Below are positions 42,088 through 47,995 of a stretch of 64,000 bases of DNA, in pieces (the stretch's first letter is position 1; every line of letters starts with the position of its first letter). The DNA comes from Hyaloraphidium curvatum SAG 235-1 (lineage: Eukaryota > Fungi > Monoblepharomycota): positions 620,001-684,000 of the forward strand of contig JAIVFI010000019.1 in the NCBI GenBank assembly GCA_025558095.1, given 5' to 3'. The position numbers and the translations under genes are program-made. The notes under the pieces are model-generated. The model saw only the letters and a list, made by a program, of their open reading frames with translations, was not told the origin of the DNA and searched no databases.

Positions 42088-42459
42088 GCCAGGGCGGCGG
42101 CGGACTGAGCGGGCCAGGTTTTGGGCCAAGGAAGTGCCGGCCCGGGTACCGAGCATATATCGGAAATTGCTTGCATCATCCCCGGGGACAGTAGTGATCA
42201 TTGTGTACCCACGTGCCATTCTGGAGTGGTGTTCATCGTTTTCGGGGGGGAAGGAGTCGGCAGGCTTCCTCCCCATCCATCATGGCGCCCCGTGGTTTCC
42301 TTTGGGTCGCTCCTTCTGCTGGGCTAGTTTGATGGCCGACGTTCGCAGCGCCGGAATGGGAGCTGAGGGTGACGGGGGGTGGTGGGGCGGCGAGCTGGGA
42401 GACAGGCGATTGGCCCACCTGCGCGTCCACTCGTCGTGCCCCAAGCCCCGCCCGAAACC

Positions 42460-43740
42460 ATGGCCGCGCAGTCCAAACCGGAAAACGAAGGCGGCGCCGC
42501 CGCGAAGCCGCGGTCCAAGCCGCCGTGGTGGATCATTTTCGTGGACTGGCCCGACGCCGTCGCCATGCTCGCCTTCCTCGGGGCCCTGATCGCCTTCAAC
42601 AAGTCCGACTTTGCCCGGCGCTTCTACGCCGACCTCGCCAAGCGGTTCCCCGACAAGCTCGAGCGGGCGCGCCACATGCTCGACATCAGCGGCAGCGTGC
42701 AGCTATACACCTTCTGGACACTTGCCGCGCTCTACGCCGTGCTGGACCTCACCAAATGGCCCAAGTTCCTCTATCGGTTCCGGATCCAGAAAGGGGACCC
42801 GCCCAAGGCGTCGTGGTACCTCAAGGTCGCCGTGTACAACTTCGCCGCCCAGAGCCTGGTCATGGGGCCGTTCGCGAGCAAGGTCCTGGAACCCATTTGG
42901 TGGAAACGCGGCGGGGCCCAGCACGCGACGAGGATCCCGTCGGTGGGAAGGACGGTCAAGGAGTGGTTCATCTGCGAGGCCTGGGTGCAGTTCTGGCTCT
43001 ACACGAGCCACCGCATCATGCACCTCCCCTGGCTCTACAAGTGGACCCACAAGGTGATACTTCTGGTCAGTTCGACGTCTGGTAGCCGACCACTCGGTCC
43101 CAGTTCCACCACTACCACACCAACCCCATGGTCATCGCCAATTTCTATGGCACCCCGTTCGAGTCGATCTTCCAAAACACCCTGGCGGGCCTCGCCCAGT
43201 ACCTCCTCCCCATCCACCCGAGCACCATGTGGTTTTTCAACGCCTACCACGATTGGGAAACCGCGACGTCTCACTCGGGTTGGTTCCCGCGCCGCTGCCG
43301 AACTGGTTGTGATAAGAGCGATCACACGCAATCCGCAGGCTACGCGATCCCCTTCGCCACCAACGCGCTGCAGCACAACTACCACCACAGGATGTTCGAG
43401 GGCCTGTACGGGCTCCACAGCGGGTGGGTGTTGCCTTGCTGCCGCCGCACGGGCCCCTCTGACGCCCACTGTGCGCAGCATGCCGATCATGGACATGATC
43501 TTCGGCACCGCGGACGAATACTTCCAGTGGCGCTGGGAGTGGCTCAAGACGCACCACTGGTGGGCTCGAAGGGGGTCTGCTGCCTCTCCTGCGGCTGCTG
43601 ACCCGTCGCCTTCGGCTCACAGGCTGTGGAACACCCGACTGGACGGGGTCAAGGACGAGGAGGCGGAGAAGGTGCTCAACATCGAGGGCGTGGACAGGGA
43701 CGGGGCGCCGCTGATCGGGGGACGGGCCGAGGCAGCGTGA
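42460..43740 (+). CDS. Fatty acid hydroxylase/sterol desaturase superfamily, tandem copy 2
   Basis: Close paralog of 40748-42087 with the same His boxes. Confidence 0.9.
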   Translation: MAAQSKPENEGGAAAKPRSKPPWWIIFVDWPDAVAMLAFLGALIAFNKSDFARRFYADLAKRFPDKLERARHMLDISGSVQLYTFWTLAALYAVLDLTKWPKFLYRFRIQKGDPPKASWYLKVAVYNFAAQSLVMGPFASKVLEPIWWKRGGAQHATRIPSVGRTVKEWFICEAWVQFWLYTSHRIMHLPWLYKWTHKVILLVSSTSGSRPLGPSSTTTTPTPWSSPISMAPRSSRSSKTPWRASPSTSSPSTRAPCGFSTPTTIGKPRRLTRVGSRAAAELVVIRAITRNPQATRSPSPPTRCSTTTTTGCSRACTGSTAGGCCLAAAARAPLTPTVRSMPIMDMIFGTADEYFQWRWEWLKTHHWWARRGSAASPAAADPSPSAHRLWNTRLDGVKDEEAEKVLNIEGVDRDGAPLIGGRAEAA

Positions 43741-43955
43741 GCTCGTGCGGGGTGGGGTTTGGATCGTGGGGCCGGGGAGGGTCCGACAAGAGTATGGCGC
43801 TAGATGTCTGAAGTGTTTGCATTAGTGGTAGCAGCCAACAGAGTCGGGTTGCTGACAGACGGGCGGGTACAAGTCCAAAGCGGCGCGGTCACCTGCACGC
43901 TGCATACTCAGCGAAATCTTGCTTCGGTGCATGTCAATCCAAGTCAGCTCTCTTG

Positions 43956-44909
43956 CTAGCCATCTACACCGGGCCAATGCACGCCCCCGCCCCCGTCGTC
44001 CTCGCCCTGGAGCCACCCCGCCACCCAGGACCTCTTGGACTCTGGCATCTTGCTGCCGTCTGTAGGTGGCACGCTGATACTCCGCAGGTTAGAGTCTCTT
44101 CGCTCGGTCCGTGGGGGTTTGTGGATTATGTAGCTGGTGCTGGGTCGGAGGAAGTCTGTTCTTTCCCTCCACGCCTCTGCTCCGACGTCCCAAGCGGATC
44201 CCGGCTGTGTTTCGGAGTCGCAGGCGGGGGTTGGACCGTCCCCCAGCTCACGCGCTCGTCCAGCCTGCGAAGACAGTAGAGCGTTACGGAGGTATTCGAC
44301 GTGCCAAGGAACCGAGAGCCGTGCCGTCGAGGCAAATGACGGAGGCGCGGCCGCGAGCGGCGGGAATGTCCGGTGCCCGTCGAGCAGGGGCTGTCCCACG
44401 GAACGGTGGGCAAGCGACGTTGACGATGGGGAGAGTATGTCCCCGGTGCTGCGGGAGAACCGGCGGCCGACAAGCCTGGGACGCGGCGCCGACGGGTCGA
44501 AAACGTGTGCAGCCAGCCGCCGCGCCCCAGGCCCGTCCAGGGACTCAGTGCCCGAGCCGTCCGACTCGTCCGACTCGCTTTCGTCTTCGCTGTCCAGATT
44601 CCGGTACCCGGGGCCGATGGCCATGGTGCGGCTGGAACCGGAAAGGACGAACGGGGCTGCCCTTGCTGCGGGGTCCGCGGGTGGCGGAGCCCGCGCCCAG
44701 TCGGCGGCCACAAAATCAAGCGGAATCGCCGCCGCCGACCGCGAGCGGGATATCGGGAGCAGCGGGGCGGGGGCGGGACCCGGTGCGGTGCCCGCCGCAC
44801 CCCTCTCCCGCCGGCCGTCCGCCGACAGCGGCGACAGGGGCACGAGCGCCTGGACGAACTTCTCGTCGCGGGGCCACAGCGAGTCCGGGGCCGACGACGC
44901 GCGCCGCAT
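43956..44909 (-). CDS. Orphan disordered protein A (shared N-terminal motif family)
   Basis: Uninterrupted ORF beginning MRRASSAPDSLWPRDEKFVQALVP. Confidence 0.55.
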   Translation of the reverse strand: MRRASSAPDSLWPRDEKFVQALVPLSPLSADGRRERGAAGTAPGPAPAPLLPISRSRSAAAIPLDFVAADWARAPPPADPAARAAPFVLSGSSRTMAIGPGYRNLDSEDESESDESDGSGTESLDGPGARRLAAHVFDPSAPRPRLVGRRFSRSTGDILSPSSTSLAHRSVGQPLLDGHRTFPPLAAAPPSFASTARLSVPWHVEYLRNALLSSQAGRARELGDGPTPACDSETQPGSAWDVGAEAWRERTDFLRPSTSYIIHKPPRTERRDSNLRSISVPPTDGSKMPESKRSWVAGWLQGEDDGGGGVHWPGVDG

Positions 44910-45748
44910 CGCGATCCGTGCCGTCGTCCTCGATCCTTCGGTTCTGAGTGGTGCGGCAGGTCGGTCCAGTCCCCGTGTTTCGGGCGGGATTTCTTCAGGG
45001 CAACGCATGCCGCCTCGCTCCTCTGCTCATGCATGCCAAATGCACCATCCGCTGGGGGCAATCCATGAACAATGTGTGCTCCACGCACGGCATCTATCCA
45101 TGCGCCGCAAGGTTGTCGGGGGGAGCGGGCGGTTCTTTGGGCGGATTTTCCTGTTCTCTGTCAGATAACGGAAATAGGATGAAGGACTGGACGGGACACG
45201 TATAAAAAGGAATACGAACTGGCCACTCCACATCTCCGTTGGGGAACTGGCGACTAATTGGTTTGGCAGCTTGCTCGCGCAAGAAAAACCGCCTTTTGCC
45301 ACCAGGGCCCAACGTCTGCCGAAGCAACTACATATCCGCATGGAGCTCTCGCGCGACAGTCGGACCGCCTCGGAGACGGGTTACTGAGGCGATGGAAGGC
45401 GGTCCGTGTCGAGTCCATGCAAAGGAATGCGAACGGCGGATCTTCCCCTGTCGGCATTCTTGGCCGGTTGCGGCGGGGCGCGTGTCGTGTTCTGTTCCTT
45501 ATTGAAGTCAAAGACTCTTGCAGCTCCGCAATGCGAACCCCATCCGCCCCCAGCGCAGCGGAAGTTCTCGTTTCGAGCCGAGCGTTGGGATTGGATAACG
45601 CGCCGGCTGGTCCGGAACCAATCCACGGTTCGAAGACACGATCAGCTAGCCGGGAAACCGCCCGTTTGCCCCGGCTCTAAGCGGTCGTCCGACGAGGAGA
45701 TCGGAGCCACCTCAGCGCCGGCCAGGAAGCGCAGCCATCTGTCTGCCC

Positions 45749-46585
45749 CTACACAGCGGGCTCCGAGTGCCGGCGCAGGTGGGGCCCGGGGGCGGGAGAG
45801 GCAAGGGAATGGTGCAATGCAGTTGCTTGTCCGGCAGTGCACAGGTGCGATCCGCGGTCGATATCTGCTGGGAGGGATGCGTAGATCACGGGAGGACCGG
45901 ATCTGCCCGGAGGGGAGGGAACGTCCGAGTCGGGTGAGGAGTCGTCGTCCCTGTGCTCTTGCTCCGGGTGCGTGCGAAGTGGGATGATGAGCACGCGGGG
46001 CGAGGGCTCGGAACGGCGTCTCGGTGGGGAGGGCGGGTCGTGCCGGTGGCCGTGTTGATGGTGGTGCTTCGGGGCCGAAGGAGGGGCGTCAGGCCTCTCC
46101 AGGTATATCGGCTGGTCATGGAGTGGTTCAGGATCACGTGGCGTCCGGTAAAAAGCCTGCATGGACGCGGCGACCGCACAGGGCGGCGGCCCCGGTGGCA
46201 GGTCCTGCCCGTGCCCGGCCCCGCCGTGGTGGCCGTGCCGCCCCGGGTGCTTTTCGGAATCAGACGTGCGGTGCGGTGATGCGCCTGGCACGGCGGCGCC
46301 GGCCGCGTCCGGCGGCAGAGGGAGTCCGGCCACGTGAATCCCCGCCGGTGACCCCGCCGGCGCCCGAACCGCCGCCCCGCCCCCCGCCGCGTCCTCTGGT
46401 GCGATCTCCGCGTCACCCAGCGCGGCCAAGGATTCTTCGACCGGCGCCGGGCCCCGTTTGCTGTCCTCTCCTCCCTGCCGCGGCACGAGCTCCCTGACCC
46501 AGGCAGCGTCCCTCAGTCTTGACCACGCCCCTGGATCCGACGCCCGCCTCGTCCCGGGCCCCGGCGGCGCCAGAAGATTGTCCAT
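45749..46585 (-). CDS. Orphan disordered protein B (shared N-terminal motif family)
   Basis: MDNLLAPPGPGTRRASDPGAWSRLRDAAWVRELVP; further RRRSEP and RRHSEP. Confidence 0.55.
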   Translation of the reverse strand: MDNLLAPPGPGTRRASDPGAWSRLRDAAWVRELVPRQGGEDSKRGPAPVEESLAALGDAEIAPEDAAGGGAAVRAPAGSPAGIHVAGLPLPPDAAGAAVPGASPHRTSDSEKHPGRHGHHGGAGHGQDLPPGPPPCAVAASMQAFYRTPRDPEPLHDQPIYLERPDAPPSAPKHHHQHGHRHDPPSPPRRRSEPSPRVLIIPLRTHPEQEHRDDDSSPDSDVPSPPGRSGPPVIYASLPADIDRGSHLCTAGQATALHHSLASPAPGPHLRRHSEPAV

Positions 46586-47227
46586 TGCTCCTGGTTTCGG
46601 GCGCCTCTCAACCTCGCGTGTTGGGGGACGAGGGAGCGCTTCCCTCCAAAACCCCTCAGGCTCCTGACTGTGGCCTCCCTCCCCCGAGGACCCCGGCCCA
46701 GCCATCCCAGCAACCCGCCCCTCAGCACATCGCTCACCACCGCCGTGCACAAATTTGGCCCAGCGATGAGGGAGTCTTCTATCGTCTTGCTTGCGTCCGG
46801 TCCCCGTGCTCAGGGGAGCCGAATAGCAGGGCCCGATCCCCGTTCCCAAATGACTCACATCCGTGCCGCTCCTTCCTTTGTTTGCCCAAGGGAGGTGCGG
46901 TAGTGGACGCTTGCGAAGGGTGCGGGGAAGGTGCTGGACAACGATCCGGGGTACATCTGGCTGACGGAGGGAAGGATGGTGTTCGAGACGGCCGGATCGG
47001 TGTTTTCGGTCAATCTGCTGTAACCTTTTGAAAACATAAGCATCAAGGTTCCGTCGGGTCTGGGGGACCAGGATGATGGAATATGGGTCTCTCGGATGCC
47101 CAGATCGTGTTTGTGCTCGGATTACACGGTGGCGCGCCTGCGCACCGCCGGATGCTACTCATCGATGCCCTACAGCGGATGCCCAGATTTCAGCTTTCCA
47201 GCCTCCTCCCTCCCTCTTCACCTCCGC

Positions 47228-47995
47228 TCATGCCGCCACCTCCCTCCCTCCCCAGTACCCCCTCAGATCCTCCCCCCCGTCGCCGCACACGGCCGTGTAC
47301 GCCCGCAGCCCCGGGCCGACCTTGCCGTGCAGATCCCCGCGGAGCGATTCGAGCCCCTCGCGGAGGATGCGCTCGCACTCTGCGGGCGGGTACCCCCGCG
47401 CGTAGTCCGCTACAGCCCACGTCTCGCGCACCTCGACGGCCCCCAGGAAGCGCACCCGCTTGCGGGGTTTCGCCGCGCCTGGGAGGGCGGGGACGGCGCC
47501 CGAGGGGCGGCGCAGACGGGCGGCGGCGCGGGCGCAGGGGAAGGAGGCCGATGCGCGGGCGGGGAAGGAGGCGTCGGGCGTCGCGGAGGGCCCGCGGGGG
47601 TGCGGGAAGGGCGAGGCGGGGGAGGAGGACAGGGAGGAGATGGAGGGCGCGGCGGCGGGGAAGAGCGGCGAGTCGAGGGTCGAGTCCGACGCGGAGGGCG
47701 ACGGCGGGTGCGTGTCCAGGGGCGGCGGCGGGGCCTTTGCCCGGTAGCGCGCGAGCCCGGCCGCGGGGCCGTCGCCGCCGAGCGTCGCGTCCGAGTCTAG
47801 CGAGTCCGAGCGCACCTTTCCGAACGGCGGCTCGCCATGCCCGGCGGCCGCGAGCGCGGCGTCTGCGCTGGCCCTGCGCGGCATGAGGTCCCGCACGAAC
47901 TGCATGTCCCGCGGCCAGGCGGCGCCCGCCCCGACGCACGGGTCGGAGCGGCGCCGCGGGATGGCGAACGCGGGGCCGCGGTCGGGGAACTGCAT
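47228..47995 (-). CDS. Orphan protein C, putative PP1-interacting (RVxF) protein
   Basis: RRRSDPCVGAGAAWPRDMQFVRDLMP; KRVRFLGAVEVRETWAVADYAR. Confidence 0.65.
   Translation of the reverse strand: MQFPDRGPAFAIPRRRSDPCVGAGAAWPRDMQFVRDLMPRRASADAALAAAGHGEPPFGKVRSDSLDSDATLGGDGPAAGLARYRAKAPPPPLDTHPPSPSASDSTLDSPLFPAAAPSISSLSSSPASPFPHPRGPSATPDASFPARASASFPCARAAARLRRPSGAVPALPGAAKPRKRVRFLGAVEVRETWAVADYARGYPPAECERILREGLESLRGDLHGKVGPGLRAYTAVCGDGGEDLRGYWGGREVAA

Follow-up and report, generated by a model that had tools for sequence, protein, structure and literature searches.

The locus analyzed here lies within a window of 64,000 nucleotides from Hyaloraphidium curvatum, a monoblepharid chytrid, and raises the question of what unites three ORFs of the minus strand, denoted A, B and C, that share a short N-terminal motif and little else. 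The preliminary description presented them as tandem, intronless orphan genes with divergent effector tails, one of which (C) carries a signature for binding of protein phosphatase PP1. The three ORFs are present as claimed (Table 1). Apart from the motif, there is indeed no alignment between A, B and the family of C; comparison of A, B and C at the DNA level yields short matches at the chance level and nothing more, and Pfam scans of the three proteins and their relatives detect no family above the threshold. The GC content of this genome is 64-77%, with long ORFs in every frame and low-complexity sequences, and overlapping ORFs of 250-340 aa are abundant in the other frames of the A/B/C region. 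The overall account that we favor, with moderate confidence, is that C represents a PP1-docking family with an N-terminal phosphomotif, and that A and B are neighbors that carry the motif and lack the docking block.

Table 1. Features of the A/B/C locus (positions in the window)
Feature	Positions	Strand	Description
Gene A	43956..44909	-	317 aa from likely Met at 44909 (ORF 43956-45008); N-terminal motif only, no PP1 block
N-terminal motif of A	44838..44906	-	residues 2-24; variant RRASSAP
GC-rich hairpin in A	44478..44544	-	flanked by 5-nt direct repeat GGGAC; fold -60.8 kcal/mol, z -3.2
Gene B	45749..46585	-	278 aa from likely Met at 46585 (ORF 45749-46858); N-terminal motif only, no PP1 block
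N-terminal motif of B	46481..46549	-	residues 13-35
Second RRxSEP of B	46004..46021	-	RRRSEP, residues 189-194
Third RRxSEP of B	45758..45775	-	RRHSEP, residues 271-276, C-terminus
Gene C	47228..47995	-	255 aa, disordered; N-terminal motif, PP1-docking block and terminal DLRGYW (full family member)
N-terminal motif of C	47879..47956	-	residues 14-39, RRRSDP...WPRDMQFVRDLMP
PP1-docking block of C (predicted)	47327..47464	-	residues 178-223: RVRF (RVxF), VEV (PhiPhi), ETW, DYAR (Arg motif), then helix
Terminal DLRGYW of C	47252..47269	-	conserved (M)PxL(R/K)xYW end motif of the family (alignment)

The designation of C as an orphan turned out to be wrong. The H. curvatum genome encodes about nine paralogs of C, which makes about 10 full copies, often in tandem, and at least four relatives (P0003, P0006, P0007 and P0015) come from at least three other eukaryotic samples, a tandem pair in L054 among them. 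Full members of the family are disordered proteins of 226-414 aa that share the N-terminal motif, a C-terminal block of the form K/R-V-x-F..V.V.ETW...EYxRG accompanied by a helix, and PxL(R/K)xYW at the very end. Instead of three orphans with divergent tails, about 10 paralogs and four foreign relatives combine the N-terminal motif with the docking block, and, judging from the sequences, this combination is the ancestral architecture. Related fungal proteins produce weak matches to PF17817, and three fungal relatives (P0009, P0011 and P0013) have a longer tail, ...DYDRRGD..C..LT..IK.ELN..K..EM.VH...THFF, that is absent from the Hyaloraphidium family. Word-indexed protein searches started with C or with the family alignment were swamped by low-complexity words and yielded nothing beyond the query itself and a single known relative, which says nothing on absence; in the ESM Atlas, C and the tail of A retrieved just sub-threshold clusters of fungal "hypothetical proteins". 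The codon usage of C is typical of the genes of this genome (GC3 0.93, codon log-odds 0.37), and its protein is present in NCBI nr (label P0001). The AF2 model of C contains no folded domain and is disordered except for two helices, residues 29-37 and 204-223, the latter with a pLDDT of about 85.

The string RVRF..ETW..DYAR is located in C as described (Table 1) and opens with an RVxF motif, [RK]-[VI]-x-[FW], at R180-V181-R182-F183. The family form of this string is (K/R)(V/T)x-F-x3-V-x-V-x-E-T-(W/Y)-x3-(E/D)-Y-x-R-G, with a helix after it; across 26 C-terminal blocks, V and F of the RVxF motif hardly vary, if at all, and profile positions T22, Y28 and R30 are the same throughout. A hydrophobic PhiPhi strand falls in the range of 4-7 residues past RVxF, and the aromatic T(Y/W) and then (D/E)-Y-x-R come at a spinophilin-like spacing, with the consensus VrFse.aVeVgeTWskdEYdR aligned to spinophilin by HMMER. 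A search of the PDB (177,635 sequences) with the profile of this block bears out the proposed PP1-binding signature: the matches are spinophilin (3EGG/3EGH, E 8.4e-5) and neurabin (9GSU, 2.1e-4; 3HVQ, 1.7e-3), and the alignment to the spinophilin/neurabin chains from PP1 complexes spans RVxF through DYDR. Matches of the same profile to Phactr, KNL1 and DP71L are marginal (E 0.26 to 2.5) and not significant. One class of PP1 cofactors has in common an RVxF-PhiPhi-R-W string, a disordered segment that runs around PP1, from the pocket for RVxF onward along strand beta14, after which a helix can reshape the hydrophobic groove; the domains of Phactr and Bni4 are related (PMC7599070). At the sequence level, the C family, its conservation and its match to the PP1-binding region are established, and the C-type family, with its predicted binding, is a new variety within the known class of PP1 regulatory subunits.

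We infer that this block enables C to recruit the catalytic subunit of PP1. Prediction of a complex between residues 165-255 of C and a PP1 core gives scores of 0.78, 0.60 and 0.56 (median 0.60, best control 0.00), a result that is rated as weak support and that comes with no reported interface. A similar complex is already solved, and the score may echo the model's memory of the spinophilin-PP1 structure; across the runs, at least 59% of the contacts agree and the pLDDT of the partner is at least 46. PP1 was represented in these runs by a metagenomic fragment (P0016:1-250) that lacks about 55 N-terminal residues, not by the H. curvatum protein. The PP1 and PPZ genes of H. curvatum are multi-exon.

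The PP1-binding domain of spinophilin (PPP1R9B) and neurabin-1 (PPP1R9A) is collinear with KRVRF-LGAVEVRETW-AVADYAR of C, and a helix follows in both. The likeness is limited to the docking string and thus does not imply orthology: spinophilin and neurabin possess an actin-binding region, a PDZ domain and a coiled coil, all of which are missing in C, whereas the proteins of the C family are short and disordered, have an N-terminal motif and a terminal PxLRxYW of their own, and the block itself is found at dozens of loci. Phactr1-4, PNUTS, PPP1R15A/B (GADD34/CReP), the viral protein DP71L and yeast Bni4 follow a general docking logic like that proposed for C but differ in the spacing and the flanking domains.

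The element that all three ORFs share is the motif RRxS(D/E)P..W.RD..(F/W)V..L(V/M)P near the probable start codons of A, B and C. In the family, it takes the form M-x(0-12)-RRxS(D/E)P-x(4-10)-(W)x(R/K)D-xx-FV-xx-L(V/I)P and, in all members, comes immediately after the probable start codon, with a short amphipathic helix after a site of the basophilic-kinase type in an R-x-x-S-x-P context. A profile built from 10 family members, none of them from the window, and run against 1290 six-frame pieces recovers C (E 1.5e-11), B (2.1e-9) and A (2.2e-5), with the next match at 0.11, so the motif is truly shared as had been proposed; hhalign against the family gives E 2.9e-5 for B and 4.3e-4 for A. The motif is also conserved in relatives from other organisms, including lower-GC ones, and matches no known domain in Pfam or the PDB sequence library. 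RRxS(D/E)P is found in 10 of the 14 family proteins, with 13 occurrences (four outside the N-terminal motif) against 0.06 expected from composition, and the shorter RRxS occurs 27 times in these 14 proteins against 3.6 expected. Classically, PKA prefers R-R-x-S/T sites with a hydrophobic +1 residue, D or E in this position being atypical; in the family, the +1 residue of the RRxS sites is D/E or S, not hydrophobic. By pattern, RRxS(D/E)P matches the sequence context of 14-3-3 mode 1, R-x-x-(pS/pT)-x-P: like the mode-1 clients (R-S-x-pS-x-P), it places Arg at positions -3/-4 with Pro at +2, and, like bidentate 14-3-3 clients, family members B and C9 repeat the site two or three times, but the continuation W.RD..FV..L.P belongs to no described 14-3-3 motif. 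The variant RRASSAP of A keeps the R-x-x-S-x-P of 14-3-3 clients with a shift of one residue, and a 14-3-3 gene is present in the H. curvatum genome. These features are compatible with a phosphorylation-dependent switch under a basophilic kinase; once the serine of RRxSxP is phosphorylated, the likeliest partner would be a 14-3-3 protein, the binding of which would control the place or the timing of PP1 holoenzyme action.

Among the credible matches to the N-terminal motif in the genome, only A and B carry the motif without the block, and the profile of the C-terminal block matches neither gene in any of the six frames. By eye, F-x9-W-x3-Y-x-R near residue 230 of A, and possibly a segment of B, might pass for a degenerate remnant of the block, but this is unsupported by the block profile and hhalign. 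Most likely, A and B are local, perhaps partial, duplicates of a C-like gene, the 3' part of which was lost or replaced. The transcript contigs come from a single run, presumed to be RNA because one contig skips an intron, and carry neither strand nor expression level; within these terms, the coverage of A and B by contigs is in line with the initial proposal. The contig of A (43843-44948, with adapter sequence at the 44948 end) has the greatest depth in the region, 118; B is covered at 45252-46155 and 46319-46644 with no joint, and C at 47237-47517 and 47570-47720. Given the contig coverage and the retention of several RRxS sites, A and B may act as competitors devoid of PP1 for the reader of the N-terminal motif.

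Alternatively, A and B could be transcribed but non-functional partial tandem duplicates, with 3' parts that are chance ORFs read through GC-rich non-coding DNA, so that C is the sole working gene; we regard this as rather unlikely. In its favor, the codon log-odds of A falls from 0.30 in the N-terminal half to 0.03 in the C-terminal half, and that of B starts at 0.13 and declines to 0.00 by the end of the ORF, with 0.06 to 0.00 in the last two thirds, compared with a median of 0.30 for the training genes and -0.12 to 0.16 for the best intergenic frames. The GC3 of A (0.75) and B (0.71) is low against 0.83-0.93 in the family, their tails showed no resemblance to anything in the searches and alignments run, long ORFs in other frames are many, and B, with either tested start, is missing from the public protein collection. 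On the other hand, by the codon score the frame of each ORF is the best of six in every segment, the tail of A contains two more RRxS sites, and that of B has, as had been reported, two more RRxSEP hexamers, for each of which the expectation is about 0.005. The depth of the A contig and the presence of A in the public annotation (a model that starts at 45008, 350 aa, in NCBI nr under label P0014) likewise speak against remnants. Taken together, the tails of A and B are weakly constrained, and both genes may be decaying copies. That the N-terminal motif itself is a chance resemblance of unrelated Arg-, Pro- and Ala-rich ORFs is highly improbable: high GC, long ORFs in all frames and low complexity would favor such an origin, but it is contradicted by the leave-out profile, the fixed position after the start and the conservation in lower-GC relatives.

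A different role of the motif within a genuine family is also conceivable, namely, that it is not a 14-3-3 switch but faces PP1 as a tethered substrate or pseudosubstrate, with the phosphoserine at the active site of the phosphatase held by the C-terminal block. In Inhibitor-1 and DARPP-32, an N-terminal RVxF motif is followed about 25 residues downstream by a PKA phosphosite, RRRRPpTP. Like these proteins, C is a small disordered putative PP1 ligand that couples RVxF to a basophilic site, and in all full members the motif and the PP1 block occur together, with 150-250 residues of flexible linker between them. The site lies near a hydrophobic helix, and composite surfaces of PP1 and its cofactors read hydrophobic residues downstream of a phosphosite (PMC7599070). 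We nevertheless consider this arrangement improbable: A and B keep the motif without the PP1 block, which implies either a PP1-independent reader or a vestigial motif in these two genes, and the order and spacing of the elements are unlike those of Inhibitor-1, the phosphosite being N-terminal and RVxF, as part of a spinophilin-like string, following only after 150-250 residues; nor is there any sequence similarity to Inhibitor-1 and DARPP-32. The reading of C as a PP1-docking protein with an N-terminal switch, accompanied by A and B as motif-only neighbors, is retained here.

The specificity of PP1 is provided by hundreds of cofactors, mostly disordered, and, to our knowledge, switching of the cofactors themselves is known for just a few. 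The family described here is lineage-specific, belongs to an early-diverging fungus and combines a well-understood kind of docking string, that of spinophilin, with a putative N-terminal phosphomotif that is undescribed and fixed in position. The docking string is found at no fewer than 84 loci of the 32-Mb genome, which suggests an unusual expansion of predicted PP1 cofactors, undescribed as far as the present searches show. It is a speculative extension, to which we assign a low probability, that monoblepharid chytrids amplified the spinophilin-type string to at least 80 regulators, with one subfamily gated by the N-terminal phospho-SLiM (RRxS(D/E)P plus the FVxxLxP helix) and decoys like A and B titrating its reader; if true, this would add a new regulatory layer to the assembly of PP1 holoenzymes. 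In practice, this locus is of modest importance. It demonstrates no new biochemical principle, and the two motif-only genes are perhaps just decaying duplicates; as natural "deletion mutants" next to the full copy C, however, they make the function of the motif directly testable.

The claim that the genes are intronless agrees with the contigs for B and C; for A, the cDNA contig lacks 62 nt (44478-44539, joint 44477>44540). An intron was considered here, as a gene close by contains one of 63 nt with GT..AG ends, and rejected as the likeliest reading: no position of the cut provides canonical ends, the junction falls at a 5-nt direct repeat, the missing segment is a hairpin, and the codon score of the resulting frame is -0.42. 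For these reasons, the skip is most likely a jump of the reverse transcriptase over the hairpin, and a deletion allele fits less well. If the skip were real in the mRNA, A would be cut to 186 aa.

All three neighbouring minus-strand ORFs, A, B and C, are present as described in the preliminary description, and the quoted N-terminal motifs, the two additional RRxSEP sites of B and the RVRF..ETW..DYAR string of C were verified at their exact coordinates. The genes, which had been taken for orphans, belong to a family. Searches of the genome of Hyaloraphidium curvatum, a monoblepharid chytrid (G000; 31.9 Mb, 55 contigs, ~67% GC), identify four close full-length paralogs of C (on contigs C11 and C26, and two on C25) and more distant ones on C9, C11 (a second copy), C28 and C2 (two copies), all of which carry the N-motif (RRxS(D/E)P..W.RD..(F/W)V..L(V/M)P in A, B and C) close to their start and, towards the C-terminus, a conserved block (C-block). 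In one C2 member (see the table), the two blocks lie in different open frames, so that this gene is either intron-containing or frameshifted. An exhaustive HMMER search with a five-member alignment against 1.84 billion representatives yields only 13 matches, three of which are full-length foreign relatives: P0006, of metagenomic origin, and P0003 and P0007, each from a different SRA assembly. P0007 is in tandem with a further family member, P0015, and this tandem pair is encoded in L054, a sequence from SRA assembly SRR26194948 of a lower-GC eukaryote. The L054 pair adjoins a homeodomain gene as well as a CitMHS transporter, which is 51-65% identical to Hyaloraphidium homologs, and both its members contain the motif HG..GHGLCW.CWK, which is absent from the Hyaloraphidium copies. 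The lower-GC relatives retain three elements, namely RRxS(D/E)(P/S)...(R/K)D..F(V/F)..L(I/L); K.V.F....E(T/S)(W/Y)...(D/E)Y.RG followed by a helix; and the terminal PxL(K/R)x(F/Y)W. This sequence conservation indicates that the family is real and predates the species. No Pfam model matches any part of the family proteins.

A search of all PDB chain sequences with a profile of 26 C-blocks yields significant matches only to spinophilin (3EGG, 3EGH; E 8.4e-5) and neurabin-1 (9GSU, 3HVQ), and the matched chains are PP1-binding domains crystallised with PP1. The alignment spans the RVxF motif, the PhiPhi strand and T(Y/W), up to the arginine of DYDR; Phactr, KNL1 and DP71L, likewise PP1 ligands, come next with non-significant scores. 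The RVxF-PhiPhi-R-W string is common to spinophilin/neurabin, PNUTS, PPP1R15A/B and Phactr1, and the Phactr domain can replace that of yeast Bni4 (PMC7599070). The AF2 model of C is disordered throughout except for helices 29-37, within the N-motif, and 204-223, directly after the Arg motif. Prediction of a complex between residues 165-255 of C and a PP1 catalytic core (residues 1-250 of the metagenomic fragment P0016; the PP1 genes of H. curvatum are multi-exon) gave scores of 0.78, 0.60 and 0.56, whereas all three controls scored 0.00; at least 59% of contacts were shared between runs, and the partner pLDDT was at least 46. By the rating of the prediction tool, this counts as weak support, and it may reflect memory of solved complexes. 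The family architecture is conserved, and the C-block significantly matches a structurally defined PP1-binding string; it is likely that C binds PP1 via this block, with the following helix on the PP1 hydrophobic groove as in spinophilin and Phactr1. In this respect, C resembles spinophilin/neurabin as a putative PP1 cofactor of that type, but it lacks their PDZ, actin-binding and coiled-coil parts and hence is not an ortholog.

The PP1 site of C is a recognisable, already known string; what merits attention is the conserved N-terminal motif, the natural copies with this motif only, and the large expansion of the docking string. At E<=0.01, the C-block profile detects 84 loci in the genome, ~65 of which also reach E<=1e-5; they lie in open frames of 110-1100 codons and are often clustered, several in tandem, in what appears to be an expansion of PP1 cofactors that is both large and lineage-specific.

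Coordinates of the features discussed (without prefix, positions in the window, which corresponds to G000:C19:620001-684000; G000:C2, C25, C28 and C36 are contigs of the H. curvatum genome, distinct from gene C)
Feature	Location	Strand	Remarks
ORF A	43956-45008	-	
Likely start of A	Met 44909	-	MRRASSAP..., cf. MARRASDP in a paralog; from motif position in relatives and cDNA coverage
ORF B	45749-46858	-	
Likely start of B	Met 46585	-	from motif position in relatives and cDNA coverage
ORF C	47228-47995	-	
Likely start of C	Met 47995	-	from motif position in relatives and cDNA coverage
GC-rich hairpin in coding region of A	44478-44544	-	near-perfect, ~24 bp, -60.8 kcal/mol, z -3.2
X1 contig over A	43843-44948		depth 118
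X1 contigs over B	45252-46155, 46319-46644		depth ~12
X1 contigs over C			two fragments, depth 2-5
Neighbouring gene	42379-43740	+	63-nt GT..AG intron 43559-43621, contig joint
Family member	G000:C2:224812-226328	-	N-motif 226233-226328, C-block 224812-225000
C-block cluster	G000:C36:496000-523000		~10 loci
C-block cluster	G000:C25:556000-590000		several loci
C-block cluster	G000:C28:549000-567000		several loci
Tandem pair, co-oriented	L054:4476-5720, L054:6430-7425		N-motif and PP1 block in both

The N-motif is common to A, B and C beyond chance, because a profile built from ten family members encoded outside the window and searched against 1290 six-frame pieces recovers C, B and A with E values of 1.5e-11, 2.1e-9 and 2.2e-5, respectively, the next match being at 0.11. 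The hhalign alignments of A and B with the family are confined to this motif, outside which A and B do not align with each other. No counterpart of the continuation W.RD..FV..L.P was found in PDB or Pfam; the libraries searched contain no description of the N-motif or of the terminal PxLRxYW, both of which are specific to the family. Across 14 family proteins, RRxS occurs 27 times against 3.6 expected (three times each in A, B and C), and RRxS(D/E)P 13 times against 0.06 predicted from composition. The N-motif has arginine at -3/-4 and proline at +2, some members contain it more than once, and the genome has a 14-3-3 gene, which tentatively suggests a putative phospho-switch read by 14-3-3; D/E at +1 of the serine departs from the classical PKA preference, so that no particular kinase is indicated.

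Among credible N-motif matches in the genome, A and B are the only copies without the C-block. A codon log-odds model trained on 21 family genes at other genomic loci always ranks the annotated frame first of six, with in-frame scores of 0.37 for C (median of the training genes, 0.30), 0.30 and 0.03 for the N and C halves of A, and 0.13, 0.06 and 0.00 for successive thirds of B, against up to 0.16 for the best frame of intergenic DNA. The tails of A and B are thus weakly coding, as would be expected of decaying copies, an explanation that appears less likely than not: the excess of RRxS and of RRxS(D/E)P, two extra copies of which fall in the tail of B, argues against pure decay. Local duplication best accounts for A and B, which would have retained the promoter-proximal N-motif, with the PP1 block lost or replaced; such proteins may act as PP1-less competitors, though this too is less likely than not.

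The preliminary description called for RNA coverage of the ORFs, and contigs of X1, presumably an RNA run since one of its contigs skips the 63-nt intron of the neighbouring plus-strand gene, cover all three genes, although they give neither strand nor a reliable expression level. A 350-aa form of A is present in the public protein set, where B, sought with two candidate starts, was not found. The only cDNA contig across the hairpin of A lacks 62 nt (44478-44539), and this skip, which takes out the hairpin, is flanked on both sides by the direct repeat GGGAC, has no canonical splice ends at any admissible cut and leads into a frame scoring -0.42 in the codon model versus 0.03 unskipped. A reverse-transcription jump is the probable cause, with a deletion allele and non-canonical processing as possible alternatives. 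The cDNA contig of B extends ~500 nt beyond the stop (45252-45748), to ~300 nt from the likely 5' end of A, which implies either that the 3' UTR of B is long or that there is read-through in the direction of A. The neighbouring plus-strand gene, the unspliced first part of which gave no match in a Pfam scan, contains, by eye, His-box motifs resembling those of a fatty-acid hydroxylase or sterol desaturase.
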